Source: Cyanophora paradoxa CCMP329 | Lineage: Eukaryota > Plantae > Glaucophyta | Assembly (NCBI GenBank): GCA_004431415.1 | Contig: QPMI01000603.1 | Location: 124,001-188,000, forward strand | Direction of reading: 5' to 3' | DNA: 64,000 nucleotides | Shown here: in pieces, positions 18,140 through 41,448 of the stretch | Numbering within the stretch: the first letter of the stretch is position 1 | How the letters are laid out: each line of letters starts with the position of its first letter | The notes under the pieces: generated by a model | Seen by the model: only the letters and a program-made list of their open reading frames with translations | Told to the model about the DNA's origin: nothing | Databases searched by the model: none | Translations under genes and position numbers: made by a program

Positions 18140-19509
18140 CGCAAGGCGAGAGCAGCAGTCCGCAACGACGTTCGACCGCCCGTTGCGGTACTCGATAGTG
18201 TAGTTGTAGTGGTTGAGGGCGATGGCCGCGCGCCCAAGCGTCTTGTTGTTCGCCAGCTCCTGTGTCTTCAACCATTGCAACGCCGAATGATCCGTGCGGA
18301 TCGTGAACGGGTGGCCGCAGACGAAGTAGTGGTGCCAGACCTTAACCGCCAGAGTACCGCAATGCATTCGCCCTCCGTTGGTGATTGGTACTTGCGCTCC
18401 ATGTTTGTCAGAGTACGACTGATGAATGCGATCGGGCGCTCGCGGCCGTCCTTGTCCTCCTGCATGAGCACCGCTCCCATGGCCCGTTTGCTCCAGTCCG
18501 TGTAAATGATGAACGGCTTCGTGAAGTCGGGCAGCATCAGCACAATGTCCTCGCACATCGCCTTCTTGAGGTCGTCCAACGCAGCGAGAGCCTCGTCATT
18601 CCACACCAAGTTGAGCCGGTCGGCTCGTAGTGCGTCCGTGAGGAGGTCTCGCAGGGAAAGTTCCCGTCGCGCGTAACTCTGTACGAAGCGCCGGTAGAAG
18701 CCTGTGAGGCCGAGGAAACTGCGGAGTTGCTCGACAGTCTGGAGTTCGTTCGCCGTGATCTTGGAGATGATCTCAACCTTCTTGGGGTCCATGCGAATGC
18801 CGTCGCTGCTGACACGGAATCCGAGCAGCTCGACTTCCCGCACCATGAAACGACATTTGCTGGGCTTGAGTTTGAGGTTACCGCGGTCGATCGCAGCGAA
18901 GAAGGCCTCCAGGTCGAGAAGGTGTTGTTTGACGTTCGGCGAGTGGACCGTGAGGTCATCGACGTACGCCACGACGCAGGTGGACAAAAGGTTGCCCAAA
19001 ATTGACGTCACGGCTCGACAGAACGCCGCTGGGCCGTTCGTGATACCAAAAGGGGTCACTTTCCACCTGTACATTCCCCAGGGGACGATGAATGTCGTCA
19101 GGTCACGTGACTCCTCGTCGAGTTCCAACTGCCAGAAACCCGACGTTGCGTCGCCAGTCGAGAACGTGGACGCACCCTGTAGGCGCTCCAATTGGTCCTC
19201 AATGCGTGGCAACGGGAAGACATCACGTTCCGTGAGGGAATTGAGCTTCCTGTAGTCGACGCAGAATCGCATCGTGCCATCCTTCTTCGGTGCCAGCACC
19301 ACGGGGCTGCCGAAACCAGCTTGCGAAGGCTCGATGAGACCGTCGCGTAGCAGCTTCTCGATTTCCGCCTTCGCAGCCTTCTCCGCAGGCGGAGAGAGCC
19401 GGCGAGGGACGGTGTACAGCGGGAGGTGCTTGGCGGGGACGCCGGGCAGAAGTCGGATGCTGTGCTTGTACTTCAGGAGCTCGCGTGGATTGATGTTCTG
19501 GGTGAAGCA
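18140..19509 (-). CDS. Gypsy reverse transcriptase and RNase H domains of pol
   Basis: SPVVLAPKKDGTMRFCVDYRKLN, TPFGITNGP, YVDD, LRSFLGLTGFYRRFV, IYTDWSKRAMGAVL, FTIRTDHSAL and NVVADCCSR. One frameshift near 18360. Confidence 0.95.
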
Positions 19510-20014
19510 TTTACGCCTCGCTTCATTCGGAATCAGAGAAGCCTAGCTAGCCTAACTTGCCTACGACTATTCTAAAGGGATGCACGGTATAGCGCATCGG
19601 GAGTGGCCCTGAAGGTACGGCAGCTGGATGCTGCTTTCCCGAGACCTAACGTGGGGATAACACGTCGGCGACCGACCAGGGCGGGTCGCCTTATGCTCTT
19701 TCGGCCGCTTCCTTCCGGAGGCGGGTGAAAGCTTACCCCTGCTCCGGACCGGAGCGGCGGTAAGGCTGAGTAATCCCGTACCCGTGCGGCGGGTACCGGA
19801 TTCTCGTGGCCGAGGCGGAGGTTTTGGCGTACCCCTGAGCAGGGTACGCGTTCAGCTCGAGCCACGCCTGACGGGGCCTGGCGGGGCGAATGCTGTACCC
19901 CGGCGCGGGGTACGCGATTCTACCCGGGCCGGTAAGCGGTCCCGGGTACCGCCGCCGAGGCGCGGGGTGGCGATTGTGCGTGAAAACATCGCACGAGTGC
20001 TGTACCCCTACCAA
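19510..20014 (-). repeat. Split direct repeat B2 (~505 bp)
   Basis: Near-identical to 20432-20935. Confidence 0.95.
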
Positions 20015-20116
20015 GATTGCCAGAGTATTCTACGGATACTCGTAGCGCGTTGGAAAAGGATAGAGCCGTCGCATCCACAAACAGCCGATTGTGAAAACGC
20101 GGGGAGGAGGGCGGGA

Positions 20117-20431
20117 GCGATTTCGCTTCGCCGCTGGGTGCCTGGTCAAGCTGGCAACCAAGGACGAAGTTATGCCGAAGGGCAGCCGAAGGAATGGCCG
20201 TACCCCGGCCTTCGTTCGCCTCAGGGCGCGACCGAATCAAATTCTGAGTTCTCCCCGGAGTCGGTGCAGAACTCGAATTCTGCTATACCGTGCTCGAGGC
20301 CCGGACCCGTCGCTTAGGCCGGTCCGGTCGCTCGGTCCTTCTAGCTAAGGTAGGCAGTTGGCGCTCTGGCTTCTCTTCTATTCATTCCGTCGGCGCAAAA
20401 CTCGGTTTACGCTTAATTGCGCAAACCCCGA
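20117..20431 (-). repeat. Split direct repeat A2 (315 bp)
   Basis: Near-identical to 29709-30023 and, inverted, to 35296-35610. Confidence 0.95.
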
Positions 20432-20935
20432 TTTACGCCTCGCTTCATTTGGAATCAGAGAAGCCTAGCTAGCCTAACTTGCCTACGACTATTCTAAAGG
20501 GATGCACGGTATAGCGCATCGGGAGTGGCCCTGAAGGTACGGCAGCTGGATGCTGCTTTCCCGAGACCTAACGTGGGGATAACACGTCGGCGACCGACCA
20601 GGGCGGGTCGCCTTATGCTCTTTCGGCCGCTTCCTTCCGGAGGCGGGTGAAAGCTTACCCCTGCTCCGGACCGGAGCGGCGGTAAGGCTGAGTAATCCCG
20701 TACCCGTGCGGCGGGTACCGGATTCTCGTGGCCGAGGCGGAGGTTTTGGCGTACCCCTGAGCAGGGTACGCGTTCAGCTCGAGCCACGCCTGACGGGGCC
20801 TGGCGGGGCGAATGCTGTACCCCGGCGCGGGGTACGCGATTCTACCCGGGCCGGTAAGCGGTCCCGGGTACCGCCGCCGAGGCGCGGGGTGGCGATTGTG
20901 CGTGAAAACATCGCACGAGTGCTGTACCCTACCAA
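20432..20935 (-). repeat. Split direct repeat B1 (~504 bp)
   Basis: Near-identical to 19510-20014. It abuts A2, recreating the joined element ends (+ strand ACCCCGA|TTTACG). Confidence 0.95.
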
Positions 20936-21118
20936 ACAAGAGTCAGGTCACAGCCAGTTGAAAGAGCGTCGGGAAGGTCTCTGAGGGTGCCGCGCAGACC
21001 AAGCGGGTTCGAAGAGACAAAATTGTATTATAAAGAGTCAGGGCTACAATGGTGTCACACTCCTAGTGAACATTATGTAGGGCCGGCCGCGGGTGAGAGA
21101 GGCGCCGGCGGCGCCGGC

Positions 21119-22087
21119 TCAAAAGCCGAGGTCGGCCAGGTCGGAGGACAGATGAAAGAGGTAGTCCTCAATATATCCTTGGGGCACGGAAGAGTACAGT
21201 GCCCAGCGGCCATGCCGTCGGATCCAAGTGGCCGGGAGGCCCCGGCGGGCCGCGGCCGTCGCGCCACCGCGGCGCAAGCTGTGGCCCGAGAAGTCGGTCG
21301 GGTCGTAGCCGATGGCCTCCGCGGCCTCTTTCACGAGGCGGCGGACGAAACCAACGGTGATGGCCGCGGCGGGATCGGAGAGGCGGGGGAAGAGGGGGGT
21401 CCCGGGCGCCGCCTGCACCGCCGTGCTCGCGACGTACGCGCACAGCAGGCGGACGGGGCACGAGGCGGGGCATTTGCCCGGGTGAGGTAAACCACCGCGC
21501 CGTGGGCGGTCCTGTCGGTTTTGGAGCGCCGGATGTGGAGGGCGATGCGGGGGAAGGGAGGAGTGAGAATTCGAGGTCGTCGACCCGCAGCGCCACCAGC
21601 TCCGCTCCCCGGAGGAAGCCCGCGATGCCGGTCGCGAGGACGGTGGCGTCGCGGAGGCGCCGGGGAGGGGCGCGTGACAGGAACGATGGGGTGGTCAACC
21701 ACGCGCGCAGGTCGCCGGGCAAGAAGGCGCGGCGTTGCGCTACGGGGCGGCCCAGGCGGGCCTGCATGCCTCTCCATGCGGTCGAGTACATGAACGAGCG
21801 GGGTCTGGTGGGGTCGACGAGGCCGCGAAGTTTGAGTTCGCGCCACACGTGGGCGGCGAGGCCTTTAACGGTGCTCGCCGCGAGGTCTTTTCCGGAATGG
21901 CGGCGTCGCTGGGTGGCCGCGTCGGCCAGGAAGAGGAGGATGGACCGTTCTGCGTCCGGCGCGAGGCCGTGGCACTCGACGAACTCGAAGTAGCGGCGGG
22001 CCGCCCGCCGTTGGCCCGCTGACGTGCCGGGGGCGAAGGCCGCCCCCTGCCAGGCCGCGAGCTCCGCCTCCGCGGGCGCCGGGGTTA
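21119..22087 (-). CDS. Tyrosine recombinase of the YR retrotransposon
   Basis: Catalytic set FLRGAEL (R), RRSKTDR (K), SGHSLRRGG (HxxR), HGRW and PQGYI (Y). Indel frameshifts near 21560 and 21420. No ATG ahead of the N-terminal domain. Confidence 0.9.
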
Positions 22088-25000
22088 CTGCCAGAAGGTC
22101 AGTTCCAGGGGCCAGCGGGAGGAGCCGAGGCCGATGCGCCCAGAGTAGAAGATGTGGGACGGGAGGCTAGAAAGCGGGAAAGAGGTGACGGCGGCGGGGC
22201 GGGGGGGGAGGCGAAGCTCCCCGAGGGCCACCGACCAGGTGGTGCTGGGCTGGGAGGGGAGCAGGAGGCCCAGAGGGCCGGACGCTGGGAAGCGTCGGAG
22301 GGAAGCGATCAGGGCCGCGCGCAGCCGGGAGTCGACCGTAAGGACGGTCGGGGCGCTCGCGCGGACGCTGCCAAGCCACGGATCGTCCTCGAAGGCGACG
22401 TGGTGGTGCTCGGCAAGCGGGGCGTCTAGGTGCGTGCGGCACCGCGAGAGGAGGGCCCGATGCAGCGACGGGGCGCGAGCGCCGTCGCGGGAACCGCGGT
22501 CGGCGAAGACGTTGGCCGCGCCGGGCAAATGGCGGGCGGAGATCGAGACGCCGAGAGCCGCGCAGCGGTGCCAGAGGCGAGCGCTCAGGTCAAAGAGGCG
22601 GGCCGAACCGCCGCCCCGAGCGACTGCCGCGACGGCGGAGCGGTTGTCGCAGCGGATGAGAACGTGCGCACCCACCGGAAGGGCGGGGAAGAGCTCGTCC
22701 GCGGCGGCCACGATCGCGCGAAGCTCGCGTTCGTTGCTGCTGGTCTCGCCGCGCCGCATGGGGCCCTCGCTCGCGCGGAGTTCGGGGGGGAAGGTGCCGA
22801 AGACGGACCACGCGGGGCGTTGGCGGACGGCCGTGGGTCGGCGGACTCGAGCTGATCGAGGAAGGCGGCGTAGCCGTAGCCGGAGGCGTCCGTGAACAGC
22901 CGGAAGAAGGTCCGAGGCGTCCAGATGGGGTGCGCCGGGCGCTCCGGGCGTTGGAGGGCCGCTTGGAGCCAGCGGAGGCAGTCGAGTGCTGGGCCTTCGA
23001 TGGTGACGGCCGACTGATTGAAGGGGTCGGCGAGGGCGTCCGAGGTCGACATGAGGCCGAAAAGTGGCCGAGTCATGAGACGAACGGCCGGGAACGCCAT
23101 GCGCAGCGCGATGAGTGAGCCCGCCAGCTTTTGCAGATCGCGAGCCGACGCCGTGAGGCCGCGGGGGCCGGGCGCCCGGTCGAGGACGCCGGCGAGGCGG
23201 GCGAGCGTTTTTGCGACCTTCTTCGGGGTCACCGCGAAAACGCCGCGGTCGGGACGGACGTCGATCTCGATGCCGAGGTACTCGGTGCACTGGGTCGGTG
23301 TGAAGTCGGACTTTTCCGAGAACGTAATGCCTAGCTCGGGCGCGCAAGCACGTAGGTGCTGGGAGACGAGCTCCGCGATTTCGCGCGACGGGCAGATGAA
23401 CAGGCCGTCGTCGATGTACGTGCAGAGCTTCACGCCAGCGCTGCCCAGTACTTGGCAAAGGCGCGCGTGACCTTCGTGAAGGCGAAGCAGGCGATGTTCA
23501 CGCCGAAGCAAAGGGCCTGGTAAATGTAGAGTTTGCCGCGCCAACGGAACGCCAGGAGGCGCTGGGTGTCCTTGTTCAGGGCGATGTGATAGTAGCCTTT
23601 TTTAAGGTCGAACTTCACGAGCCAGCAGCCGGGGGTGAGGTAGGACGCAACCTCGTCCAGTGTTTGGTACCGGAACGTCGGCAAGCGGATGAACGGGTTC
23701 ACGGGGGTGGCGTCGAGGCACAGGCGGAACTTGTCTGGGCCGGCCTTGTCGACCACCAAGAGCGAAGACTCGTTAACGACGAGCTGTTTGTCTTCCTCGG
23801 TGGCAAGGCGGGTGACGCCGAGGCGCAGCATCGCCGCGACCTCGCTGTCCACGAAGGCTTCGTGTTCTGGGGTCCGGTGGCACGAGGGGCGTGGGCCCTC
23901 GGCGCGCGTGCGGGGAATGTCTGCTAACGACGCTGCCGGCGTGCCGTCGGCGTGCTGGAGTGGGAGGCGCAAGCCTTTGCGCAGGATGAGGCCCACCCAC
24001 GAGGGGACCGTCGTGTCAGCCCGCCGGAAGTAAGCCCGCCAGGCATGCGCGTAATGCTGGAGTTGCCCCGCCCGAAACTTCTGTGCGGCCGCCGCGAAAT
24101 CGTACGGGCCGGGGTCCCCGTGTGCAGCTACGAGTGCTCGCAATTTTGCGAATGGGTCGCGCACAAAGACACGCGGTGTACTCGAGGGTACAGACAGCGG
24201 TACAGGCGGCGGACGCGACTGGTCACAGTCTACTGGAAGGGTCGTGGCGGGGGGAACGGCTGGCACGGGGGGCCCCTTGCGGTCGGCGGCAGCCGCCGGA
24301 GGGGGTGTCGCCGCAAACACCCGCGCCAGGAGTGGAAGCGGCTCAGCCGTCGGCCGGCGGCTGCGGCTTGCGCCGGGGGGGCCGCTGGACGGCGCCGCCG
24401 CGGCCTCCGCCCCGCTGACGGTGGTGGGGTTGGGGCTGGGCCGGCTGGGCAGTCCCGTACTGCCGCCGGGCCTGCTTCCAGGCGCGCCCGCGCTGCTGGC
24501 CGCGGTGGGTTGGCCCGCCGGAGCCGGGGTCCTCGACGTCACCGTCGTCGTCGTAGGAGAAGGTCGCGACGCCGCCGTAGGAGTGGGCTGACCGAGGGTC
24601 GGTCCGGGCGGAGGAGCAGGTGGGGCGGACGGACCGGCCTGCGAGGCCTGGGAGAAGAGCGCCGCATGGGAGAGTGTGGGGCGAGTGGGGGCCTTGTCCG
24701 GGCGGGGCTGCGGAAGCTCCGTGCGAGCGAGCGGTGGCATCATGAAGAAGGAGCTCCGCTTGCGGCTCGTCCGGCCGTAGGACGACAGTAGCTCCCGTGG
24801 CTCCGTCCACGCGCTCACGCTGTCTTGCAGCCGCTTGAGGAGACGCTTGAAGAGCGGGTCGTCCTCGAGGCAGGCCTGGAGCACCGCCGACGTCTGGGCG
24901 ATGTCCCGAAGCTTCTTGTAGACCGGGCGGGTGAGGGCGTTCCAGTCCGTCAGGAGTTGGCCGAGGGGCCGGTCGGGCCGCCGGGTAGGCGGTTGATGAC

Positions 25001-28000
25001 GTCGCCGACCTGGTCGAACGCCGCGATGGCCTGGCGGAGTTCCGAGTTGCCCATGTCGCGCAGCACCAGGCCGTGGGAGAAGCGCGCCAGATCGCGCATG
25101 CAGGCGATGCCGTACTTGGCAAGAGCCGTGGTGATGCGCTCGTCGGGGAAGGGTCGCTGCTGACTGTCGCCGGGGAAGACGGCGTTGTCGAAGCACGACT
25201 CGATTTCCTTGATACGGGCGGCCAAGTCCGGGACGCGGGCGGAGTTGTCGACCGCCGTGGAGGGAATGTTGAGCTTGGCGAAGGCCGTCTCGCGCAGCGT
25301 GAGCTCGGGGAGGCCCTCGTAGACGAGGGGGGGCTCGGCCGGTGGCGCGGCCTTCTCTGCCGCCGTCGCCTTGGCCTGGGCGGTGGCGCCCTTCGCCTTG
25401 TCGTCGCCGCGCGCCTTCTTGGGGGCCGGAGCCTCTGCAAAAAGGCATGTCGGCCGGGCTGTGGCCGACCGCGGAAAACAATCAGCGCGGACCGAGGGGA
25501 GCCTTCTCCTTGGCGTGGCCGCGCGTCGCCTTGCCGCTGTACACTGGGCAGCGGATTCTGCACGATCCCGGGTCAGTGTGACGGAGGGAGGGTTTGGGCT
25601 GCGGCGGCCACGAGTCCGTACCGGACTCGGAGGGAGCGTCGACGTGGGGACTGGCGTCCTGCGGCGTCGAGGTGTCGTCCGAGTCCCAGTCGCCGGCCCA
25701 GTCGTCCTCGCCGGCGGGTTCGTCGCCGGGGGCGTCGGATTCCGCCTCGTCCTCCATCTCTGCGTCGCTGGGGACGAACGGTCGGGCGCGGGTGGAGGAT
25801 GAGGTCGGGGCTGCTCTGTCGGCGCTGCGGCGGCGGGCGGGGCGAGCTTCTGCGCGGCCTGGGTGGCCCCGCGGCTGCCGGAGCGGGCGGCGGGGACCCC
25901 ACGGGGGCCGGCGGCGAGTGGCGCGGCGGTGTGGGGAGCGGCCTGCCGGGGCGGGAGCTGCGGGCCGGCGGGCGGCATCCGGAAGCCGGGGTCGGCGGGG
26001 CCGAACCAGTCGGTCTGCGGGCCCCCGAAGCCCGGGAACATGCCGGCGCCGTGGTTGGCGGTGCCGGAGGAGGGCCAGGGAGCCGCGAAATGCGGGGGCG
26101 CCTGGACGACCCAGCCCGCTGGCGTGACCGTGGAAGCGGCCGAGTAGCGGGGCTGCTGCTGGTGCTGCAGGAACGGGGACGGAACTCCCGCGGGCCAGAA
26201 CGGGGGAGGCGGGCCGCCGCCGGCCATGCTGGCGAGGCCGGCTTGCAGCATGGACGCCGCGAGCGCCTGCGGGTTGGCCGGCGGAACGGGCGGCAGGTCG
26301 GAGACCGCGGGGCCGGGTTCGGCGTGGGAAGGTCGCGGGTCTCGGCGAACTGCAGGGCCTTGTCGCGGTCGGCTGCGGTGAAGTGGGCCGGGTCAGAAAG
26401 TCGGGCCAGGCGAATCTCAAGGGGGTCGCCTAGGCGGGGGTGAGCCGCCGGGGAGGCCAGCGGGCGCGTGGACGGACCGGTCTTGGCCTTGCGGCTCTTG
26501 GCGGGTTTGGGTGGCGGGGCCTGTGCTTCCGCCTCCTCGGCGGGTGAAGGCGGGGCGTCTGACTCGCCGCCTTCGTCGGCTGAGTCTGCGGGCGCCGGGG
26601 GGGCCTTCGGGGCCGAGGCCGCGGTCGCCTTGGTCCGCTTAGGCGGGCGGGTCGACCGCGAGGCGCGCGGGCGGTCGACGTCGTCGTCCGCGTCCGCGTC
26701 GGCGGTGTCGGTGTTCCGGCCGCAGCCGCCGGCTTGGCAGGCGCGGGGCGGCGCGGAGGAGCGAGGCCGGTGGGCGGGGCTGCCCCTGCGCGGCGGGGTG
26801 GGCGGCGGTAGAAAATGAGCGGGGGTGGGTAGCGCACCGGCGCGCTTCTGGGCCGGAGGGGGTGCCGAGGGGGCCGCGGCCGCTCCATGTGCCACCTTCG
26901 GAGCCCGTGCTCGCTGCCCGCGAAAAAAGAAGCATCGGCAGCGAGCGTGGGCGAGGCGAGAGGGGGTAATGTGTGCGCGGACCGACTTGGGGTCCGCTGG
27001 GGGTGCGCTGGCGGTGGCGGCGGTGGCAGCGTCGGCGTCGCCCGAGGCCGCGGCGCCGCGGCGTTTTCGCGCGGCCTCCGCCGCCTTCAAGATGTGGGGG
27101 AAGTACAGGCTGACGGCCTTGTGGGCCGGCTGGTCCCAGTCGCGCAGCACCGCGGAGGCGTCCCAGTGGGCCGGGTGGAAGCCGCAAGCGCGAGAGAAGT
27201 CGGCGAACGAGAACTGCGAAGCGGGCGACCGCTGAGTGCGCTGGCGTGCAGCGAGCGCGCGGCGGGCGGACTTTTCCGAAGGGGACGGTGCCGACTGTCA
27301 GGCCGCCCGGAAGAGATGCCGGCCACTCGCGTTTTGGAGAGACGCGGGCCGGACCGGGGGCCAGGCCGAAGGCGGCGACGATGTCGTTGCGCAGGATCTT
27401 GCGGTGATCGCGGGAGAGCGCCTTGCTTTTCTCGATGAAGGTGACAAGCAAGGGCCGGAGCCAGCCGTGGGCGTCGGCTACCGCCGTCTTGGAGTACTTG
27501 GGGACTGACTCGGGGGACCAGGCGTAGAGCTGAGTGAGCGCACCGAGCGCCGTCACTTTTTCCCAGGGTTCGAGGGCCGCCCAGTCACTGTGGAGGGTGA
27601 GGGGCGCGGCACGGTGAGCGAGGAGTGGCGTACCGGCACGGAATGTCGTCGTAGTAAATCGGGAACCCTCGCGGGAGGCCGACAGGGATGGTGCCGTACT
27701 TGTAGCCGTAGAACTCCGTGACCTCGAGGCAGGTGGCGCCGAAGGTAGCCAGGAGTACGGCGGCCGACTCGCCGAAGCGGAGTACCGCCTCGTTGAACAG
27801 CTCCCGCGGAACCGAGTCGCGCACCTCCGAGTAGTCGCTGGCGATCGCGGTTAACGCGTGACGTCGAGAGGCGGGGCATGCGGACATGTAGCCAGGGCTG
27901 GTGGGGTCGGAAGAACACGGGGCGACGGCGTAGAAACTAGCCTCGTCGACCGCGAAAGCGATGATCGGGACGAGAGAAGTGACCAGCATGGTTGACGCGT

Positions 28001-28218
28001 CCGCCGGGCGAGACTGTCAGGCCGTCGGTTAATAAGCGAGCGGGGGGTCATGCAGGCGTGACGGGGGCGGCCCACCATGAGACCGCCGTCGAGCGTGCCG
28101 CTGGAGAGGAACGGGGGGAAGATCCCGCCGTCGTCGCGCAGTCGCCGCAGAAGAGGAGGCGATGCGGTTCGGGCGCGTGGCGCCAGTAGTCGATGATCAT
28201 GGAGGCGGACACGCTCAT
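22085..28218 (-). CDS. Spliced ORF1/gag-RT-RNaseH-(degenerate MTase) polyprotein, about 1,900 aa, 8 predicted exons
   Basis: RT motifs KFRLCLD, KFDLKKGYYHI, QALCFG, TYIDD and EYLG. RNaseH motifs LFTDASGYG, NERELRA, IRCDN and HLPGAANVFADRGSR. Upstream ORF fragments join through GT-AG introns (first 28075-28014, last 25492-25435). Several homopolymer indels. Confidence 0.8.
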
Positions 28219-28384
28219 CGCCTTGCTGCCGCTGCCGGCGTCCTTATCTGCGCGGGGCCGTGTCAGCCGGTGTGTTGCGGCTGCGGCGTGGCGGGGGAGG
28301 GGCGGGGAGGCTAGATAGAGGAGCGCGGTGCGGCGCGCGTCGACTCTCGCGGGGTCTGCCGTCGGAGCCGACGGGGAACGCCGC

Positions 28385-29030
28385 TGCCTCGCCGGTGCGC
28401 GCGCCGGGCTCCGCCGGGGCACCGCGCGGGAGAGGACGGAGCACGTAACTGTGACTCAACGTCCCGCGGGGCTCGCCGGCGTGCCGGGCGCGAGCTTCTC
28501 CGCCTTCTCGCCAGTGCGCGCGCCGGGCTCTGCCGGGGCACTGCGCGAGGTGGGACGGAGCACGCGGCCCGTGCATCTACGTCCCGCGGGGCCCGCCGGC
28601 GCGCCGGTGGGTCGCGCCGCCTTCCTGTCGATGTACGCGCCGGCTCCGCCGGGACATCACACAGGGAAAAAAGGAGGGGAGCGGAGCACGCGGGCGTGCC
28701 TGGACGCTCTGCGGGGTTCGCCGGCGCGCCGGCCGCGAGCCTCTCCGCCTTCTCGCCAGTGCACGCGCCGGTCTCCGCCGGGGCACTGCGCGAGGTGGGA
28801 CGGAGCACGCGACCCGTGCCTCGACGTCCCGCGGGAGACCCCGGCGCGCCGGTGGGTCTCGCCGCCTTCCTGTCGATGTACGCGCCGGGCTCCGCCGGGA
28901 CATCGCACAGGGGAAGAAAGCGGAGCACGCAGTCGTGCCTCGACGCTCTGCGGGGCTCGCCGGCGCGCCGGCCGCGAGCCGCTCCGCCTTCCTGCCGGTG
29001 TGCGCGCCGGGCTCTGCCGGGACACCGCGC
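28385..29030 (-). repeat. GC-rich tandem repeats in the leader of YR element copy 1
   Basis: About five to six related ~120-bp units, each with CGCGCCGGGCTCYGCCGGG and CGGAGCACG. Confidence 0.85.
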
Positions 29031-29708
29031 AAGGTATGATGATGGCGGCCGCCGAGGTCCTGGAGCGCCACCGTTTTTGGCTCTCTCGCTCGGTGGCCGC
29101 CGTCATCTGCGCCGCGCCGCCGGCATGTCAGGCAGGGCATGGCGGCGCGGGTGTGGTCGGGGCGGCTTCGAGGCGGAGTTCGTCGCGCCCGTCATCGCCG
29201 CGTCGACCCAGCCGTCGCGAGGCCATGCGCGAGATGCGTAAGTGTGCGTCGCGACGGAATCGAGAAGGGGAAAACAAAGAAAAGGAAGGGCTGTCGGGCT
29301 CAGACACTTAAACGAGCGAGACTCTTCTGAGATAGTGCTCGGGCTAGGGTTCTAAGTGCACGGCCGCGGTTGGCGGCACGGCCCCGAGATAGCCGGTCGA
29401 AGATCTTCTAACCGACGGGCGGCCGGGCCGAGAACGAGCGTACCGGGCTTTAGGAAGCCCCAGTTGTAAGAGTCCAAGAGCGACTGAGAGGATCCGTCGG
29501 ACTGCCAGGGCATCATCCAGGAAGACTGAACGCCGTCAGGCCACGGATCGAGCAAGGTTCGCTGGATCGCGCCCGCCGCAGGGGATTTGGAGAAGAAGCG
29601 CTGAGCTAGCTTGCTCCACTGCAGGCTGGCGTGGCCGGTCGGCGGAATCGCCGATTCGGGTGCGTTCGGCTGCGTCATGCTGAACGCAGGTGGTATGAAC
29701 TGGCTGTG

Positions 29709-30023
29709 GCGATTTCGCTTCGCCGCTGGGTGCCTGGTCAAGCTGGCAACCAAGGACGAAGTTATGCCGAAGGGCAGCCGAAGGAATGGCCGCACCCCGG
29801 CCTTCGTTCGCCTCAGGGCGCGACCGAATCAAATTCTGAGTTCTCCCCGGAGTCGGTGCAGAACTCGAATTCTGCTATACCGTGCTCGAGGCCCGGACCC
29901 GTCGCTTAGGCCGGTCCGGTCGCTCGGTCCTTCTAGCTAAGGTAGGCAGTTGGCGCTCTGGCTTCTCTTCTATTCATTCCGTCGGCGCAAAACTCGGTTT
30001 ACGCTTAATTGCGCAAACCCCGA
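29709..30023 (-). repeat. Split direct repeat A1 (5' end of copy 1)
   Basis: Matches A2; I noticed one substitution (CGCACC vs CGTACC). Confidence 0.95.
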
Positions 30024-33000
30024 GTGCTGGCGTTGCGTGAGAAGGTTCTGGAGTTGAGTGCGATCCTCGGGAAGGGCGTCGGGGTTCGACTCCGATGGTT
30101 TCAACAGGGCGTCCACCATCGCCTTGATGGTCTCGGGCGATGGCTTTGTAGGAGGCGCAGTGTCACTCGACGGGGGCTCCATTCGAGCGTCGGCATTGAC
30201 GGACGCGATGGGCACCGTGGGGCCGACTGCGGGGCCAACCAGCATCGGCTCGGAGTCGAAGCGGGCGAAGTGAGGCTCGAAGAAGCTGGCCAGCTCCATG
30301 AGCTCCTTGTCGTTGAAGTGATCGCCGGTTCGAGCAGTGTAAGGGGTGACGACACGTGCGACGTACGACATGAGACGCTCGCTGGCCTCGTGGGATAGCG
30401 GGATGTCGGCAGCAGCATCGACGGAGCCAACATGCGCCGCCTCGCCCTCCTTGCAGTTGGGTTCGGGCGGTCGTCGGTGGTAGACCTCCGGGTAGAGGCG
30501 TCGGGCTCGGGAGATGTAGCGCCGTGGTTGCGAGCGTCGGGGTACGACAACAGGCTTGAAGTTCTCATAGATTTGCGCGGCTACGGAAGAGATCGGGAAT
30601 GTCAGTTGTTGTTGAGGTGTCCAGGAGCTGTAACACCCCTTGGGGTAGGTCTCGACATTCTCGTGTGGACGGAATTCGGACTCCGGCCAAGTCCCGAATT
30701 CAGTCTCCGCAATCACAGTTCCGGCTCGCAGGCGGACAGGCCGCCTGTGAGGGTTGCAGATCTGCACGAAAAACGTGCCGTGTGCTGGGTTGCGGTGAAT
30801 TTGGTATGGCACCAAGAATTCGACTTCGTCGGCTCCGTCGAAGCCGTCGTCGTCGAGGAGGAGTGGTGGCGGAGTGAGGAGGACTTCCGGTGCGCCGAGA
30901 GTCGTGTTCGAAGTCGTTTGTGGCATGTAACATCGAACGAGCGATTCACCCGGCCGTACAGTGATGTCCTTCGCCAATCGGACCAGAACGCCGCCGTCGT
31001 GCTGGCCCGCAGCCGAAAAGGGACGTGGAATCGTTCGCCATCCGAGGAGTCAGGCGACGTGATCGTCATTCCCCAATTTGCTGGGTCGAGCACGATGTGA
31101 GCGTTGAGCGCCACCAGCGTTGTGAGGCCGAGTAGCATTGGAGTGTTGCCCATGAGACCAGGCGCGACGACGAGGACCTTCCGCGGAATTGTGACCGGAC
31201 CAACCTTAATTGCAATGAATGCGATGCGCGCATAGGCAGTCATGTCCGTTCCAAAGCCGGTGAGGTGCACGCGCGGAGCGTTGCTGTAGCGAAGGCCTGG
31301 CAGTTTGTCGGCGATACTGCCGTCGAGTACGTCCGCAGCGGCTCCTGTATCCACCAATGCCTTGGTGAGGAGGTATTGAAGGACTTGTCGTCGGTGATCG
31401 ATAGCGGCGATGTGCAAGTTGACGCAGATTCGGCCGTCGTTGATGCGCTCTCTGAGCGTGCGGTTCGTGTCCGTCATTCGCGCAATGGGGTGTGGTACTG
31501 ACGGGCCGCCGTCGCCGAAGAGGGGAACGTCAAGGGGGTCCTCGACGTCGTCAAATCCCAACATGCGTGCCGCGCAGACGCGAAGCGAGGCGAGGTAGCT
31601 CTGCTCATACGGTGTGCACGGTGTCGAACCGGAGATGACGCTGGCTGGCGGGAGCGGTGCCGTCCGCTTGAGGCGAGGTCGCTTCCGCGTGGTTGTCCGC
31701 CTGTGCACGTTCATGAGGACGTCCGTCGCGGCGAATGGGCGTGCCCTGCAGGGAGCTGCCGACAGACGCAGCGGGGGCCGGTGATTGCGCATTGTGGCTG
31801 AAAAGTATCCGACGCCAAGGATGGGCTTGCAGTCGGCGTTTGCGAGCTTGATGAGGTGGCGGTTGCTGGGCCAGCCATAGTGAATCTCGTTGATCGCGTC
31901 AACTTCGGTCCCCGCTGCGCCATCCCGTCGTTCAGCCGGCCGGTAGCCAGGCTCTCCGGGGGATCGGAACGGGATGGCTTCGCGGTGGCGCGAGAGAGAC
32001 GCCCGGAGATATTTGACGAGTTGGGGCCAAGCGTGGCGGAGGCGCGTGTCGCGTTGGAGTACGTGCCGCTCGTAGAAACGTGTCCGTTGAGCGTCATGAC
32101 TACGGAAGTCATTGTGGAGGACCACGTCCCACGCCGCGAGGCCGATTGAATTGAGGATGAAGGCCGCCCGAGTGAACAAGGCGCGAGTGAAAGCGAGGTC
32201 GGCTGACAGGCCCTGAGAGGTTGTGAAATCCCACCGAAAGTTCTCGATCTCGTGGAGCGTCTCCAGGATTGCGTGGGCGTTGAGTTGGTGAGACCGCTGA
32301 AGCGGCGACCAGTCGTACAAGTGATAACTGGCAGCGAATTCAGGGTCCTCGAAGGCACGGTGTCGCGCGGACGTGATCCGCTCGTAGTCCGGTCCCCGTC
32401 CAGAGTAGAGGAGCCAGCAGCCCATCGTGAGATCCGTCGACGTCCTGGGATTAGTGAGGTCGTTGTATGCGATCGTGTACGTGTGCTGCCGTGTGAGCGG
32501 TCCAAGGAGGCCGTGGGGGGCGAACGCGGACGACTGCACGCGCGAGGCTAGGCTCGGCGTCCCGGCCGACGGGGTCTCCGATGGAGCTACGGACTCGGCG
32601 GTGGAGCCACCACTGTCCGAGCTGGAGTCGTCGCCGTCAGAGGTTCCCGTCGTCTCGGTCCCCGTAGGACTACGACGCGGAGGCCTGTTACTGCCAGATG
32701 GCTTGAAGACAACACCCTGGATGTGACCGAAGCGTGCCAGTCCCGTCGGCTCGTTGGTGCGCAGATCCTTGAAGTCGGTCGACCAGACGACGAAGGGTCG
32801 GACAAAGGGCTTGCGCGCAATCCCAGGGTTCCGACGAATGTACTCGTCCGTGCCCACGAGCTTGATCTTGCCGTCGAGGCGCGGGTCCAAATGTACGCGC
32901 GCGACTCCTCTGCCTTCGTCGTAGTGATGTAGTTCATGATGTTAGTGAAGCGCGTGCGGCCTTCGTACGGGTCGACAGGCGCGCCGTGGGGGCCGTGACC

Positions 33001-35295
33001 AATGTAAATGTGGGGGATCTGACGAAGGAGGCTGTCGTTGTCCGGATCGCCCAGGGAGTGACGCAGGGGGAGGACGTCGACGATCTGTACCGCCCGGTAG
33101 GCTTCGCGGCTAGTGAACGTGATGGGCCGCCTCGTCGCCGCGTCGACGGTGGCGTGATTGTAAACGAATTGTTCCAACCAACCGTGGAGTAGCGCCCGCG
33201 CCTGCGGTTCGCGACTGAAGATGGCGGCGCCGAATTCATTGTAGAATGGATCGAATGTGAAGTTGCCATATTCGGCGTGACGGAATTGCTCGTGTATGTC
33301 GGCGTATCGCTGTTCGAAATCCATAATAGCGTTGCGCACTGCGCTCGCGTTGACGTCATAGACACTGGGACGATGCGGGTGTGACGGATCGTTCGTGGGA
33401 TCGAAGTCAGCGCCCCGGACTTGGGCGTTGAGTGCGTTGATGACTCCATCCGGGAGTCGGAATGCTACGGGCCAGCAGTGGTTTCGATCCATGTCGACAT
33501 CTTCGCGAGCCGCCGGGGGTGTCTCGTGCTTGATCTGGACCGCCAACCAGTCGTTGGTTGCCTTGTGCAGTAGGGATTCGAAGGCTGTGATTAAATGTGC
33601 CGGGTCGACGCGTTCGCAGTCAGGGTACTCGACCTCGTACCATTTGTCGAGTTTGGCACTGCGCGCCACTTCGCCTGAAGCCGTGAAGCGGAAGTGCAGC
33701 TCATCCTCGTGGCTACGAACGTAGTCGATGATGATGTTCCCGAGTTCCCCCGGTAGGGCTCGAGGAAGAACGACAAGGCACCGTGCAGCTTGACTGCCGC
33801 CGCCAGGTACGCTGCGATTCCGTACACCCAAGTGTGTACCGAAAGCGGGAACCCAGGACCTGGTGGACGACGGGGGGCGTTGCAGGCGCGGTGCCCGTGG
33901 GCCCGCGACGACGCAGAGACACGACGACGCCCCCAGGGCCAGTGTAGTCATTGACGGACACCGGGAAGTACTTGGGTCGGGGCCGCACGGGTGCGGCCCC
34001 GCCGCCTCGTTTGGGGGTTTCCTCGTGCCCGCGATGATCTGCTGCCAGGTGTTCCGGTTGTTCGCGTCGAAGATAGTGATGTGCGAGCGGTTCTGGATCG
34101 CGTTGGGGCACCGCGGCTGGGTCCGGCCGGTGCAACGTGCGTGAATCGGACGATTCGAGGGCCGCACAGGTCAGCATTGGCCGGCGTAAGAGTCATGGGC
34201 GGCGCGTTGAGGTCGTCGGGCATGGCAATCTCGTAGAAGCATCGTTCGACATCTTGACGTGAAGCGGAGTCACGGAGGTGCGCGTGGTTGTCCTCGTCGT
34301 AGATGCAGTCGAAGTAGTCGGCATACTTGTTGGCCGGGTGGAACTCGTCGGCGGCCGTGATCAGGAACGATCGGAAGGGCAGGCCCGCGCGGTTGTGCTG
34401 GCTGAGTTCGCCATGGCCGGGAGCACCGGCGCGGTACGGGTAGGTGCCGGGGCCGACGCCGTAGCGTAGGACACGACTGAGTGCTCGCGAGAAGTTCGAC
34501 CAGCGTACGTGCATCTTCATGAGGAATGGGCGCATGTACGGGACGCGCCGGAGAAATGCCTCGAGACCAGAGTCGCCGAGTAGCACGTATGGCATGTGGA
34601 CCTCACCTAGGACGTGCATGTACTTCTTTGTCGTGGTGGCGGGATGAACTGGGGGTGGGTCCCGAGTCGGGATTCCCTCCAGCTCTTCGACCGGCGGCGG
34701 CTCCGGGAGCTCCTCCGGTCTGTGCCCGTCCTCCACAGTGAGCTCCTCGGTCAGATCAGCCGTCTGTCCGAACGGGGCGGGGCCTCCGAGGATGTGAGCC
34801 GCGACGGCGAAGATGTGGGGCGCGTGTCGCCCATGTTCCTGGATCGTTTTGCAGTACGCTGTGGCCAGGAAATCCGTGTTCGTGAAGAGAAGCGGTGTCA
34901 TGAAGATGTGATAGGAGGTATCCCGTCCCGGATCAGTATCCAGAGGTAGGAAGTCACCTCCAGCTCGCGTCTCCTCGGGGCTGTATGTGCGCATGCCGTA
35001 CGGGAGTGGGGGGCGAGGATTGTGGAGACGGATTGGGTACCAATCGTTGATCGTTTGGGCGAATAATTCCCCGTTGATGTGATTTTTGCGCCGTCCAAAA
35101 CCCGCGTAGAACGTGTCGCGCTCGTTCTCCGTCGAATCAGGTCGCGGTTCCCGTCGGACCATCACGCCGCTCAGATCCGGCCACACTCCGTGCTGGTAGC
35201 CAGCGCCGTCGACGACCGTGAAGCCCTTCGCCCATTCCTCGTTGAGGAAGGCCCAGAAATAGACGTCAGGAATGTCAGCGTTCTCCGAGAGTAGC
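30024..35295 (-). CDS. Upstream part of the gypsy polyprotein: long unassigned region, aspartic protease, post-protease linker
   Basis: Overlapping minus-strand ORFs 33948-35369, 32587-34167, 30713-32890 and 29970-30977 are linked by frameshifts. Protease motifs ALVDTGAAADVL and MLLGL. Confidence 0.75.
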
Positions 35296-36289
35296 TCGGG
35301 GTTTGCGCAATTAAGCGTAAACCGAGTTTTGCGCCGACGGAATGAATAGAAGAGAAGCCAGAGCGCCAACTGCCTACCTTAGCTAGAAGGACCGAGCGAC
35401 CGGACCGGCCTAAGCGACGGGTCCGGGCCTCGAGCACGGTATAGCAGAATTCGAGTTCTGCACCGACTCCGGGGAGAACTCAGAATTTGATTCGGTCGCG
35501 CCCTGAGGCGAACGAAGGCCGGGGTACGGCCATTCCTTCGGCTGCCCTTCGGCATAACTTCGTCCTTGGTTGCCAGCTTGACCAGGCACCCAGCGGCGAA
35601 GCGAAATCGCCACAGCCAGTTCATACCACCTGCGTTCAGCATGACGCAGCCGAACGCACCCGAATCGGCGATTCCGCCGACCGGCCACGCCAGCCTGCAG
35701 TGGAGCAAGCTAGCTCAGCGCTTCTTCTCCAAATCCCCTGCGGCGGGCGCGATCCAGCGAACCTTGCTCGATCCGTGGCCTGACGGCGTTCAGTCTTCCT
35801 GGATGATGCCCTGGCAGTCCGACGGATCCTCTCAGTCGCTCTTGGACTCTTACAACTGGGGCTTCCTAAAGCCCGGTACGCTCGTTCTCGGCCCGGCCGC
35901 CCGTCGGTTAGAAGATCTTCGACCGGCTATCTCGGGCCGTGCCGCCAACCGCGGCCGTGCACTTAGAACCCTAGCCCGAGCACTATCTCAGAAGAGTCTC
36001 GCTCGTTTAAGTGTCTGAGCCCGACAGCCCTTCCTTTTCTTTGTTTTCCCCTTCTCGATTCCGTCGCGACGCACACTTACGCATCTCGCGCATGGCCTCG
36101 CGACGGCTGGGTCGACGCGGCGATGACGGGCGCGACGAACTCCGCCTCGAAGCCGCCCCGACCACACCCGCGCCGCCATGCCCTGCCTGACATGCCGGCG
36201 GCGCGGCGCAGATGACGGCGGCCACCGAGCGAGAGAGCCAAAAACGGTGGCGCTCCAGGACCTCGGCGGCCGCCATCATCATACCTTGC

Positions 36290-36935
36290 GCGGTGTCCCG
36301 GCAGAGCCCGGCGCGCACACCGGCAGGAAGGCGGAGCGGCTCGCGGCCGGCGCGCCGGCGAGCCCCGCAGAGCGTCGAGGCACGACTGCGTGCTCCGCTT
36401 TCTTCCCCTGTGCGATGTCCCGGCGGAGCCCGGCGCGTACATCGACAGGAAGGCGGCGAGACCCACCGGCGCGCCGGGGTCTCCCGCGGGACGTCGAGGC
36501 ACGGGTCGCGTGCTCCGTCCCACCTCGCGCAGTGCCCCGGCGGAGACCGGCGCGTGCACTGGCGAGAAGGCGGAGAGGCTCGCGGCCGGCGCGCCGGCGA
36601 ACCCCGCAGAGCGTCCAGGCACGCCCACGTGCTCCGCTCCCCTCCTTTTTTCCCTGTGTGATGTCCCGGCGGAGCCCGGCGCGTACATCGACAGGAAGGC
36701 GGCGCGACCCACCGGCGCGCCGGCGGGCCCCGCGGGACGTAGATGCACGGGCCGCGTGCTCCGTCCCACCTCGCGCAGTGCCCCGGCAGAGCCCGGCGCG
36801 CGCACTGGCGAGAAGGCGGAGAAGCTCGCGCCCGGCACGCCGGCGAGCCCCGCGGGACGTTGAGTCACAGTTACGTGCTCCGTCCTCTCCCGCGCGGTGC
36901 CCCGGCGGAGCCCGGCGCGCGCACCGGCGAGGCAG
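36290..36935 (+). repeat. Leader tandem repeats of YR element copy 2
   Basis: Reverse complement of 28385-29030. Confidence 0.85.
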
Positions 36936-37100
36936 CGGCGTTCCCCGTCGGCTCCGACGGCAGACCCCGCGAGAGTCGACGCGCGCCGCACCGCGCTCCT
37001 CTATCTAGCCTCCCCGCCCCTCCCCCGCCACGCCGCAGCCGCAACACACCGGCTGACACGGCCCCGCGCAGATAAGGACGCCGGCAGCGGCAGCAAGGCG

Positions 37101-40100
37101 ATGAGCGTGTCCGCCTCCATGATCATCGACTACTGGCGCCACGCGCCCGAACCGCATCGCCTCCTCTTCTGCGGCGACTGCGCGACGACGGCGGGGATCT
37201 TCCCCCCGTTCCTCTCCAGCGGCACGCTCGACGGCGGTCTCATGGTGGGCCGCCCCCGTCACGCCTGCATGACCCCCCGCTCGCTTATTAACCGACGGCC
37301 TGACAGTCTCGCCCGGCGGACGCGTCAACCATGCTGGTCACTTCTCTCGTCCCGATCATCGCTTTCGCGGTCGACGAGGCTAGTTTCTACGCCGTCGCCC
37401 CGTGTTCTTCCGACCCCACCAGCCCTGGCTACATGTCCGCATGCCCCGCCTCTCGACGTCACGCGTTAACCGCGATCGCCAGCGACTACTCGGAGGTGCG
37501 CGACTCGGTTCCGCGGGAGCTGTTCAACGAGGCGGTACTCCGCTTCGGCGAGTCGGCCGCCGTACTCCTGGCTACCTTCGGCGCCACCTGCCTCGAGGTC
37601 ACGGAGTTCTACGGCTACAAGTACGGCACCATCCCTGTCGGCCTCCCGCGAGGGTTCCCGATTTACTACGACGACATTCCGTGCCGGTACGCCACTCCTC
37701 GCTCACCGTGCCGCGCCCCTCACCCTCCACAGTGACTGGGCGGCCCTCGAACCCTGGGAAAAAGTGACGGCGCTCGGTGCGCTCACTCAGCTCTACGCCT
37801 GGTCCCCGAGTCAGTCCCCAAGTACTCCAAGACGGCGGTAGCCGACGCCCACGGCTGGCTCCGGCCCTTGCTTGTCACCTTCATCGAGAAAAGCAAGGCG
37901 CTCTCCCGCGATCACCGCAAGATCCTGCGCAACGACATCGTCGCCGCCTTCGGCCTGGCCCCCGGTCCGGCCCGCGTCTCTCCAAAACGCGAGTGGCCGG
38001 CATCTCTTCCGGGCGGCCTGACAGTCGGCACCGTCCCCTTCGGAAAAGTCCGCCCGCCGCGCGCTCGCTGCACGCCAGCGCACTCAGCGGTCGCCCGCTT
38101 CGCAGTTCTCGTTCGCCGACTTCTCTCGCGCTTGCGGCTTCCACCCGGCCCACTGGGACGCCTCCGCGGTGCTGCGCGACTGGACCAGCCGGCCCACAAG
38201 GCCGTCAGCCTGTACTTCCCCACATCTTGAAGGCGGCGGAGGCCGCGCGAAAACGCCGCGGCGCCGCGGCCTCGGGCGACGCCGACGCTGCCACCGCCGC
38301 CACCGCCAGCGCACCCCAGCGGACCCCAAGTCGGTCCGCGCACACATTACCCCCTCTCGCCTCGCCCACGCTCGCTGCCGATGCTTCTTTTTTCGCGGGC
38401 AGCGAGCACGGGCTCCGAAGGTGGCACATGGAGCGGCCGCGGCCCCTCGGCACCCCCTCCGGCCCAGAAGCGCGCCGGTGCGCTACCCACCCCCGCTCAT
38501 TTTTTACCGCCGCCCACCCCGCCGCGCAGGGGCAGCCCCGCCCACCGGCCTCGCTCCTCCGCGCCGCCCCGCGCCTGCCAAGCCGGCGGCTGCGGCCGGG
38601 AACACCGACACCGCCGACGCGGACGCGGACGACGACGTCGACCGCCCGCGCGCCTCGCGGTCGACCCGCCCGCCTAAGCGGACCAAGGCGACCGAGGCCT
38701 CGGCCCCGAAGGCCCCCCCGGCGCCCGCAGACTCAGCCGACGAAGGCGGCGAGTCAGACGCCCCGCCTTCACCCGCCGAGGAGGCGGAAGCACAGGCCCC
38801 GCCACCCAAACCCGCCAAGAGCCGCAAGGCCAAGACCGGTCCGTCCACGCGCCCGCTGGCCTCCCCGGCGGCTCACCCCCGCCTAGGCGACCCCCTTGAG
38901 ATTCGCCTGGCCCGACTTTCTGACCCGGCCCACTTCACCGCAGCCGACCGCGACAAGGCCCTGCAGTTCGCCGAGACCCGCGACCTTCCCACGCCGAACC
39001 CGGCCCCCGCGGTCTCCGACCTGCCGCCCGTTCCGCCGGCCAACCCGCAGGCGCTCGCGGCGTCCATGCTGCAAGCCGGCCTCGCCAGCATGGCCGGCGG
39101 CGGCCCGCCTCCCCCGTTCTGGCCCGCGGGAGTTCCGTCCCCGTTCCTGCAGCACCAGCAGCAGCCCCGCTACTCGGCCGCTTCCACGGTCACGCCAGCG
39201 GGCTGGGTCGTCCAGGCGCCCCCGCATTTCGCGGCTCCCTGGCCCTCCTCCGGCACCGCCAACCACGGCGCCGGCATGTTCCCGGGCTTCGGGGCCCGCA
39301 GACCGACTGGTTCGGCCCCGCCGACCCCGGCTTCCGGATGCCGCCCGCCGGCCCGCAGCTCCCGCCCCGGCAGGCCGCTCCCCACACCGCCGCGCCACTC
39401 GCCGCCGGCCCCCGTGGGGTCCCCGCCGCCCGCTTCGGCAGCCGCGGGCCACCCAGGCCGCGCAGAAGCTCGCCCCGCCCGCCGCCGCAGCGCCGACAGA
39501 GCAGCCCCCGACCTCATCCTCCACCCGCGCCCGACCGTTCGTCCCCAGCGACGCGGAGATGGAGGACGAGGCGGAATCCGACGCCCCCGGCGACGAACCC
39601 GCCGGCGAGGACGACTGGGCCGGCGACTGGGACTCGGACGACACCTCGACGCCGCAGGACGCCAGTCCCCACGTCGACGCTCCCTCCGAGTCCGGTACGG
39701 ACTCGTGGCCGCCGCAGCCCAAACCCTCCCTCCGTCACACTGACCCGGGATCGTGCAGAATCCGCTGCCCCAGTGTACAGCGGCAAGGCGACGCGCGGCC
39801 ACGCCAAGGAGAAGGCTCCCCTCGGTCCGCGCTGATTGTTTTCCGCGGTCGGCCACAGCCCGGCCGACATGCCTTTTTGCAGAGGCTCCGGCCCCCAAGA
39901 AGGCGCGCGGCGACGACAAGGCGAAGGGCGCCACCGCCCAGGCCAAGGCGACGGCGGCAGAGAAGGCCGCGCCACCGGCCGAGCCCCCCCTCGTCTACGA
40001 GGGCCTCCCCGAGCTCACGCTGCGCGAGACGGCCTTCGCCAAGCTCAACATTCCCTCCACGGCGGTCGACAACTCCGCCCGCGTCACGGACTTGGCCGCC

Positions 40101-41448
40101 CGTATCAAGGAAATCGAGTCGTGCTTCGACAACGCCGTCTTCCCCGGCGACAGTCAGCAGCGACCCTTCCCCGACGAGCGCATCACCACGGCTCTTGCCA
40201 AGTACGGCATCGCCTGCATGCGCGATCTGGCGCGCTTCTCCCACGGCCTGGTGCTGCGCGACATGGGCAACTCGGAACTCCGCCAGGCCATCGCGGCGTT
40301 CGACCAGGTCGGCGACGTCATCAACCGCCTACCCGGCGGCCCGACCGGCCCCCTCGGCCAACTCCTGACGGACTGGAACGCCCTCACCCGCCCGGTCTAC
40401 AAGAAGCTTCGGGACATCGCCCAGACGTCGGCGGTGCTCCAGGCCTGCCTCGAGGACGACCCGCTCTTCAAGCGTCTCCTCAAGCGGCTGCAAGACAGCG
40501 TGAGCGCGTGGACGGAGCCACGGGAGCTACTGTCGTCCTACGGCCGGACGAGCCGCAAGCGGAGCTCCTTCTTCATGATGCCACCGCTCGCTCGCACGGA
40601 GCTTCCGCAGCCCCGCCCGGACAAGGCCCCCACTCGCCCCACACTCTCCCATGCGGCGCTCTTCTCCCAGGCCTCGCAGGCCGGTCCGTCCGCCCCACCT
40701 GCTCCTCCGCCCGGACCGACCCTCGGTCAGCCCACTCCTACGGCGGCGTCGCGACCTTCTCCTACGACGACGACGGTGACGTCGAGGACCCCGGCTCCGG
40801 CGGGCCAACCCACCGCGGCCAGCAGCGCGGGCGCGCCTGGAAGCAGGCCCGGCGGCAGTACGGGACTGCCCAGCCGGCCCAGCCCCAACCCCACCACCGT
40901 CAGCGGGGCGGAGGCCGCGGCGGCGCCGTCCAGCGGCCCCCCCGGCGCAAGCCGCAGCCGCCGGCCGACGGCTGAGCCGCTTCCACTCCTGGCGCGGGTG
41001 TTTGCGGCGACACCCCCTCCGGCGGCTGCCGCCGACCGCAAGGGGCCCCCCGTGCCAGCCGTTCCCCCGCCACGACCCTTCCAGTAGACTGTGACCAGTC
41101 GCGTCCGCCGCCTGTACCGCTGTCTGTACCCTCGAGTACACCGCGTGTCTTTGTGCGCGACCCATTCGCAAAATTGCGAGCACTCGTAGCTGCACACGGG
41201 GACCCCGGCCCGTACGATTTCGCGGCGGCCGCACAGAAGTTTCGGGCGGGGCAACTCCAGCATTACGCGCATGCCTGGCGGGCTTACTTCCGGCGGGCTG
41301 ACACGACGGTCCCCTCGTGGGTGGGCCTCATCCTGCGCAAAGGCTTGCGCCTCCCACTCCAGCACGCCGACGGCACGCCGGCAGCGTCGTTAGCAGACAT
41401 TCCCCGCACGCGCGCCGAGGGCCCACGCCCCTCGTGCCACCGGACCCC
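37101..41448 (+). pseudogene. Spliced ORF1/gag of copy 2, cut before the RT core
   Basis: ATG 37101. Predicted introns 37245-37306, 37687-37732, 38048-38105, 38334-38402, 38478-38529, 39695-39758 and 39825-39882. Confidence 0.75.

Follow-up and report, generated by a model that had tools for sequence, protein, structure and literature searches.

Retrotransposons of the DIRS order are commonly presented as sets of overlapping open reading frames (ORFs). Within this order, PAT-like/Toc3-type elements carry a gag-position ORF, a reverse transcriptase (RT) with RNase H and a Cre-like tyrosine recombinase (YR) in the same orientation, together with repeats in the order A1...B1 A2 B2, of which the internal repeats lie downstream of YR (PMC4157794, PMC3266345). 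The literature we found on the DIRS order does not take up the question of how the recombinase is expressed. For the Ty1/copia elements a splicing-based route to gag has been described, with the short-gag RNA of Arabidopsis EVD produced through coupled splicing and premature termination (PMC5580714) and a comparable gag-devoted spliced RNA in BARE (PMC3735527). Here we describe a PAT-type retrotransposon of the DIRS order from the glaucophyte Cyanophora paradoxa CCMP329, located in a stretch of 64,000 nucleotides (contig QPMI01000603.1, positions 124,001 to 188,000; hereafter the window, whose coordinates are used throughout), and the evidence from RNA, protein models and a sister family that bears on how its gag, pol and recombinase are made. 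No description of DIRS elements of Cyanophora was found in the literature, nor was any report of a splicing-set gag strategy for a tyrosine-recombinase retrotransposon.

The element runs on the minus strand in the gene order gag-position ORF1, RT/RNase H, YR.

19509–30023 (−): whole PAT-type (DIRS order) tyrosine-recombinase retrotransposon, copy 1, 10.5 kb, with split direct repeats at its borders
22085–24587 (−): pol, comprising a linker, reverse transcriptase, RNase H and a C-terminal domain (Pfam RVT_1, RT_RNaseH), with the stop TAA at 22087–22085
21119–22166 (−): YR open frame, −1 relative to pol (codon starts 22499−3k), with the stop TGA at 21121–21119

It shares gene content, orientation and repeat order with PAT-like/Toc3-type elements and differs from them in that its genomic copies keep at least eight spliceosomal introns (six proven by RNA), its YR has no ATG at its start, and its host is a glaucophyte. 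In place of a DDE integrase it encodes a tyrosine recombinase, in which the catalytic residues R, K, H-x-x-R and Y are invariant in the alignment. The proteins closest to the element are EukProt EP00741 models named tig000..._g....t1. A HMMER scan of 1.8 billion representatives additionally identified a protein (P0009) that is 51% identical and is encoded on Logan contigs L001–L003, representing a sister family, while a metagenome scan for relatives gave only fragments, 25–42% identical. The RT and RNase H of the element are of the Ty3/gypsy-like kind. In Pfam, Phage_integrase matches weakly at 19–22 bits, under the cut-off of 27.1, the RT_RNaseH match is weak, and RVT_1 reaches 44 bits in L001 (over its cut-off) and 22–24 bits in the window-family models. 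Roughly 150 residues past RNase H are kept between the window family and L001. A methyltransferase-like domain after RNase H sets DIRS and PAT elements apart from Ngaro.

Splicing of ORF1 and the 47-nt intron

Contigs of three RNA-like sequencing runs from three studies (X15, X17 and X19) and of one DNA run (X1) were placed on 21080–27079, with the reservation that assembled contigs drop rare isoforms and cannot show a true 3′ end. Six joints were present in the RNA contigs and none of them in the DNA run, so that all six represent true splices:

26914–26982 (−): proven intron, 69 nt, phase 0, skipped in the X15, X17 and X19 RNA contigs
26786–26837 (−): proven intron, 52 nt, phase-1 donor, skipped in RNA contigs, absent from the list of the initial annotation
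26373–26477 (−): proven intron, 105 nt, phase-1 donor, skipped in RNA contigs, intron 5 of the initial annotation
25558–25621 (−): proven intron, 64 nt, phase-1 donor, skipped in RNA contigs, intron 6 of the initial annotation
25435–25492 (−): proven intron, 58 nt, phase-1 donor, with 25493 joined to 25434 in three of three RNA runs, intron 7 of the initial annotation
24588–24634 (−): proven intron, 47 nt, phase-1 donor, spliced in three of three RNA runs, absent from the list of the initial annotation

The 64-nt intron shows in the contig alignment as a skip of 73 nt containing 10 intervening letters, owing to a 1-base gap at 25545. All six introns are GT..AG, and their donors read CG/GTNCG (the slash marking the splice point) except for the donor at 26837, which reads GG/GTGCG. 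The initial annotation, made from the letters of the window, had assigned phase-1 donors to introns 5, 6 and 7 of ORF1 (26477, 25621 and 25492), and all three are spliced in RNA at these positions. Two additional introns are predicted, with donors at 27354 (phase 1) and 27633 (phase 2). ORF1, in the gag position, is built from many short exons, and the abundant RNA has the six proven introns removed. Five of the proven donors are phase 1, compared with 4 of 18 unused exonic CGGT sites, which makes the phase bias moderately non-random; it is not universal, as the intron at 26982 is phase 0 and the predicted intron at 27633 is phase 2. The leader of ORF1 (28380–29130) holds 3 to 5 imperfect tandem units with a period of about 120 or 245 nt, 61–88% alike.

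The 47-nt intron lies where ORF1 meets pol, and its splicing changes what the message encodes. Frames were joined and translated with the proven introns removed and with X written at 1-base gaps of the assembly (see below). When the 47-nt intron is retained, a single frame runs from at least 26913 to the pol stop TAA at 22087, a total of 1518 codons. When it is spliced, the frame shifts and ORF1 ends at 24345 after an Arg/Gly-rich tail.

24343–24345 (−): stop codon of the gag-only product in spliced RNA, from translation of the joined frame

Since each of the three RNA runs has the 47-nt intron spliced out and the resulting frame stops at 24345, the abundant RNA is a gag-only message. In addition, RNA contigs of the three independent studies end at 24172–24181, approximately 160–170 nt past this stop, and depth beyond is about zero; judged solely from contig ends, the spliced gag RNA may terminate prematurely here. 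RNA depth is 20–57 over ORF1 and 0–5 over RT-RNase H-YR, where 21680–22279 has no RNA cover at all and contigs over YR are of low depth and confined to its 3′ half (21080–21679). No intron-retaining form was present among the RNA contigs, which have almost no cover over RT-RNase H-YR. Taken together, the choice between gag and gag-pol appears to be set by splicing, with the spliced, gag-only half directly supported by RNA; the RNA that retains the intron and encodes gag-pol we infer.

This arrangement resembles the short-gag strategy of EVD and BARE, in which an intron just past gag is spliced to give an abundant short gag RNA and the unspliced RNA encodes gag-pol, as we would expect of the window element also. 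Unlike the Ty1/copia elements, the window element belongs to another retrotransposon order, has no long terminal repeats (LTRs), protease or integrase, and uses the splice to change the frame within one ORF.

The recombinase frame and its candidate acceptor

The pol frame (codon starts 22498−3k) ends in TTC TGG CAG TAA. The YR frame is closed upstream by a TAG at 22169–22167, as the initial annotation had it, and opens immediately after; together with the pol stop at 22087–22085 this places YR in the −1 frame of pol with an overlap of 79 nt. From 22834 to 21548 the DNA run X1 is free of indels, so that the pol stop is real, as is the offset of the YR frame. The first ATG of the frame does lie inside the recombinase domain, as claimed previously, although its exact position is 21791–21789 rather than about 21792. 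By comparison with the sister family, the conserved YR protein begins at approximately 22064–22052, which is 87 codons upstream of this ATG.

An AlphaFold model of YR (predicted local distance difference test, pLDDT, 84.3) matches full-length Cre of phage P1 with a template modelling (TM) score of 0.65–0.69 over about 323/327 columns. Cre is the best solved relative of YR both by sequence (E 0.001) and by fold (E 3e-11, TM 0.68), and the two proteins share a two-domain fold along their whole length as well as the catalytic R, K, H-x-x-R and Y; they differ in that identity is only about 20% and in that YR belongs to a retroelement of a eukaryote. The first helix of the model starts 2 residues past 22088, and four helices of the N-terminal domain precede its first methionine, residue 104. 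A start at the recombinase's own ATG would thus, on the predicted structure, cost four helices of the Cre-like N-terminal domain.

Directly at the end of pol lies a site with the features of an acceptor:

22088–22102 (−): candidate 3′ splice site CTGACCTTCTGGCAG, from sequence, where the exon would begin at 22087 in phase 1

Its parts are a branch-like CTGAC at 22102–22098 and an AG at 22089–22088, giving CAG/TA at the border. The phase-1 acceptor-like site at 22087 proposed in the initial annotation (x+TA, ACC, CCG in the YR frame) is found at exactly these coordinates, and CTGACCTTCTGGCAG is similar to CCGACCCTCGGTCAG, the acceptor proven for the 47-nt intron.

The sister family provides an independent view of this junction. 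The pol of L001 is 58–66% identical to that of the window family and ends ...WPFVLTWW.. where the window family has ...WPLELTFWQ, so that the motif WP(L/F)x-LT-(F/W)W is common to the pol C-termini of both. Between pol and YR, L001 has a 78-nt spacer with stops in all three frames, which rules out frameshifting and readthrough in L001. Its YR frame is not open before 6632, and the first ATG in it falls at residue 78; the start chosen by the gene caller is a TTG. Directly upstream of YR, at 6647/6648, stands a pyrimidine-rich site, CTGACTGAC..CACGCAG/GG, in phase 1 of the YR frame. This site, TTGCTTTCCCCCTGACTGACCGCCACCTCACGCAG/GG, is 12 codons ahead of the conserved AEL..W..APGTS. The CTGAC..CAG signal, whose conservation in related families the initial annotation proposed to check, is present in L001, with the caveats, weighed below, that the motif is common, that in the window its CTGAC also encodes a Leu-Thr of pol, and that L001 could be DNA or spliced RNA.

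Across the whole of L001 (1–7807), the eight matches to CTGAC N4-22 CAG are confined to the coding strand, and four of them fall in the first 1.3 kb, a region with little codon-position GC bias yet open in a long frame.

Routes to the recombinase

We propose that the element regulates its protein output by splicing. RNA keeping the 47-nt intron would give one gag-pol protein ending at the TAA at 22087. The recombinase, which would lose four helices if begun at its own ATG, would be made from a rarer spliced RNA in which the start-codon exon is joined through a phase-1 donor (27354, predicted; 26837, 26477, 25621, 25492 or 24634, proven) to CAG/TA at 22088/22087. The product would be an N-terminal piece of ORF1 fused in frame to the full recombinase, and donor 24634 could serve two alternative acceptors. 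The logic proposed here is that of retroviral env mRNA, where one primary transcript is used, the 3′ gene is reached by long-range splicing only, and the unspliced RNA serves gag-pol and replication. The cases differ in that the 3′ exon here has no ATG, so that its product would be a fusion protein, and in that the splice here is a proposed one.

The frame arithmetic of this proposal holds: 26837, 26477, 25621, 25492 and 24634, each joined to 22087, give a frame open to 21121. The earlier suggestion that a phase-1 donor joined to 22087 fuses the ORF1 N-terminus to YR is accordingly sound as to frame, and the joint itself was not seen in RNA. The preference in the initial annotation for introns 5–7 as the donors falls away, since nothing favours them and all five proven donors are equally in frame. 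As to the particular junction it named, 25493 to 22087, the sole partner of donor 25493 in three of three runs is 25434, and the acceptor region has no RNA cover. Its further idea, that such a splice would account for the retention of the introns, is a conjecture. A spliced YR message using the acceptor at 22088/22087 we consider a real possibility, though somewhat short of an even chance. Doubtful, as a whole, is the wider programme in which one transcript would be alternatively spliced throughout, with the 47-nt intron spliced for gag, retained for gag-pol, and a donor joined to 22087 for the gag-piece-recombinase, while unspliced RNA would be set aside as template, so that new copies retain all the introns.

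Several points weigh against this proposal. CTGAC N4-22 CAG is a common motif, occurring 8 times in L001 against 5.1 expected, and there are about 20 matches to a looser motif in 7.3 kb of the element. The CTGAC in the window encodes the conserved Leu-Thr of pol, and its presence therefore needs no role in splicing. L001, which traces to the runs SRR31724264-66, could itself be DNA or spliced RNA; its codon-position GC shows coding from about 1200 onward. No contig joint onto 22087 was found in X15, X17 or X19, in a test without power given that 21680–22279 is uncovered; as RT-RNase H-YR is almost without RNA cover, the absence of this joint is uninformative. Finally, no precedent for a gag-piece-recombinase fusion was found in the DIRS-order literature. 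We therefore regard the splice onto YR as a plausible hypothesis, not as a demonstrated event.

Other routes to the recombinase can be set against this splice. YR could be translated on its own from a full-length or subgenomic RNA, either from a near-cognate start or by re-initiation after the pol stop. In-frame CTG codons at 22115 and 22094 stand just upstream of the conserved N-terminus, TTG or CTG is available in L001 (where the gene caller placed its TTG at the equivalent position), and no splice onto YR was seen, RNA cover being lacking there. Such a start would, however, lie within the RNA, over 6 kb along it and downstream of an ORF of more than 1500 codons, and re-initiation would meet no AUG before 21791, the use of which deletes four helices. 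An Rfam scan of 19000–30500 gave no match, and thus no IRES-like (internal ribosome entry site) family. We judge independent translation unlikely. Much the same holds for the view that the acceptor-like site is coincidental and that YR is expressed by some other means, for example from a separate promoter or transcript: the frequency of the motif is near chance and the low-depth RNA contigs cover the 3′ half of YR only, but two families alike lack an ATG and have the site in the same phase and place, and a young, multi-copy, intact family must make its YR somehow. On balance it seems an improbable account.

Fusion of pol to YR has two possible forms. A short local intron, either 22231–22167 (65 nt) or 22231–22047 (185 nt), would yield an RT-RNase H-YR polyprotein; Augustus models of the host annotation (P0008 and P0003) use these introns, both in frame, their size is typical of the genome, and GTG and (C/A)AG sites also occur at the homologous places of L001. 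These models are nevertheless predictions on an error-prone repeat where there is no RNA cover, the donor GTGGCC is at odds with the CG/GTNCG donors of the element, the GT and AG common to both families are accounted for by Val and Gln/Lys coding, and the intron would remove the conserved pol C-terminus WP.x.LT.W. The 65-nt version, moreover, has no counterpart in L001, whose YR frame is closed there until 6632, and a local intron is accordingly quite unlikely. Programmed −1 ribosomal frameshifting in the 79-nt overlap would likewise give a pol-YR fusion, and is in keeping with the −1 offset of YR from pol in both families and with a −1 frame that is open from 22166 in the window. No X XXY YYZ heptamer occurs between 22166 and 22088, however, the heptamers at 22208 and 22181 precede the closing TAG, the −1 frame of L001 has a TAG at 6590 and a TGA at 6629 after the pol stop, and no frameshift element was among the Rfam results for 19000–30500. 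Of the routes considered, we give frameshifting hardly any credence.

A number of specific junctions were also tried and rejected. A 73-nt intron at 22160–22088 fusing pol to YR has a phase-2 donor. Two donors inside pol would give introns of the wrong length class for the YR frame, which needs 2 mod 3: GTCCGCGC at 22366 would yield 279 nt (0 mod 3), and GTCCGG at 22283 would yield 196 nt (1 mod 3). Among the phase-1 donors close to where pol ends (22671, 22608 and 22494 in the window; 6085, 6103, 6472 and 6520 in L001) there is no homologous pair. A protein search for spliced YR variants returned only Augustus models and one Logan ORF, in single-member clusters, and the gene model P0007 of a third family passes through three frames and is uninformative on the junction.

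Copies, assembly and implications

The borders of copy 1 and the second copy in the window are as follows:

29709–30023 (−): terminal repeat A1, 99.7% identity to A2 (20117–20431)
20431–20935 (−): internal repeat B1, 99.6% identity to B2 (19509–20014)
35295–41448 (+): copy 2, 3′-truncated, 99.6% identical to copy 1

A2 follows directly after B1 and is followed by B2, so that the order A1...B1 A2 B2 is a split-direct-repeat layout and not one of inverted terminal repeats. Copy 2 ends before the RT C-terminus, which leaves only one YR within the window. Copy 2 is cut off at 41448, and about 2.4 kb past this point begin arrays (43880–45450 and 56121–61107) of a repeat measuring roughly 490 bp, with units 97–99% alike, that flank a foldback element.

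The published C. paradoxa assembly was made from PacBio RSII data and has 712 contigs, 67.6% GC and a mean intron of 86 bp (PMC6704402). Copies 1 and 2 show 23 differences, and 15 of these are indels of a single base within G/C runs. The pol and YR of the window appear frameshifted twice each, with the breaks in YR near 21548 and 21479. The DNA run X1 has one extra base behind each of 21479, 21548, 22834, 23434, 24964, 25545, 25806, 26308 and 26715, exactly at the places of the frameshifts, which identifies the breaks as 1-base gaps of the assembly and not as decay. Apparent frameshifts in repeats of the C. paradoxa assembly should not be taken as decay. With X1 contig depth at about 480–560, the family is multi-copy, and it is young and intact.

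Variant forms were also seen in these runs. At plus-strand position 22207 the majority DNA form is T, not G, changing Pro to Thr in the C-terminal region of pol as in the model P0001; this is a copy variant and not a reading-frame error. A joint of 21118 to 25903, with 2 letters between, is a DNA-level deletion form in X1 at a depth of about 50, compared with about 500 for the full form, and is also present, weakly, in the RNA run X17. It lacks the whole stretch between the middle of ORF1 and the end of the YR stop codon, whose final base is also gone, and is probably a non-autonomous derivative. In another X17 RNA contig the upstream part is unrelated sequence, and the changeover to the element falls precisely on 21118, the base that follows the YR stop; the 3′ module thus seems to be common to other elements or derivatives.

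These observations provide RNA evidence of gag-only splicing in a retrotransposon outside the LTR class, with its gag-pol counterpart being inferred. They also sharpen a puzzle, in that an element with at least eight efficiently spliced introns must copy itself from unspliced RNA. As a young, multi-copy and intact family in a culturable alga, whose YR fold would be truncated by a start at its own ATG, it offers a tractable case in which to address recombinase expression. Should the alternative-splicing programme proposed here prove true, this would be the first tyrosine-recombinase retrotransposon described with an expression strategy based on splicing.

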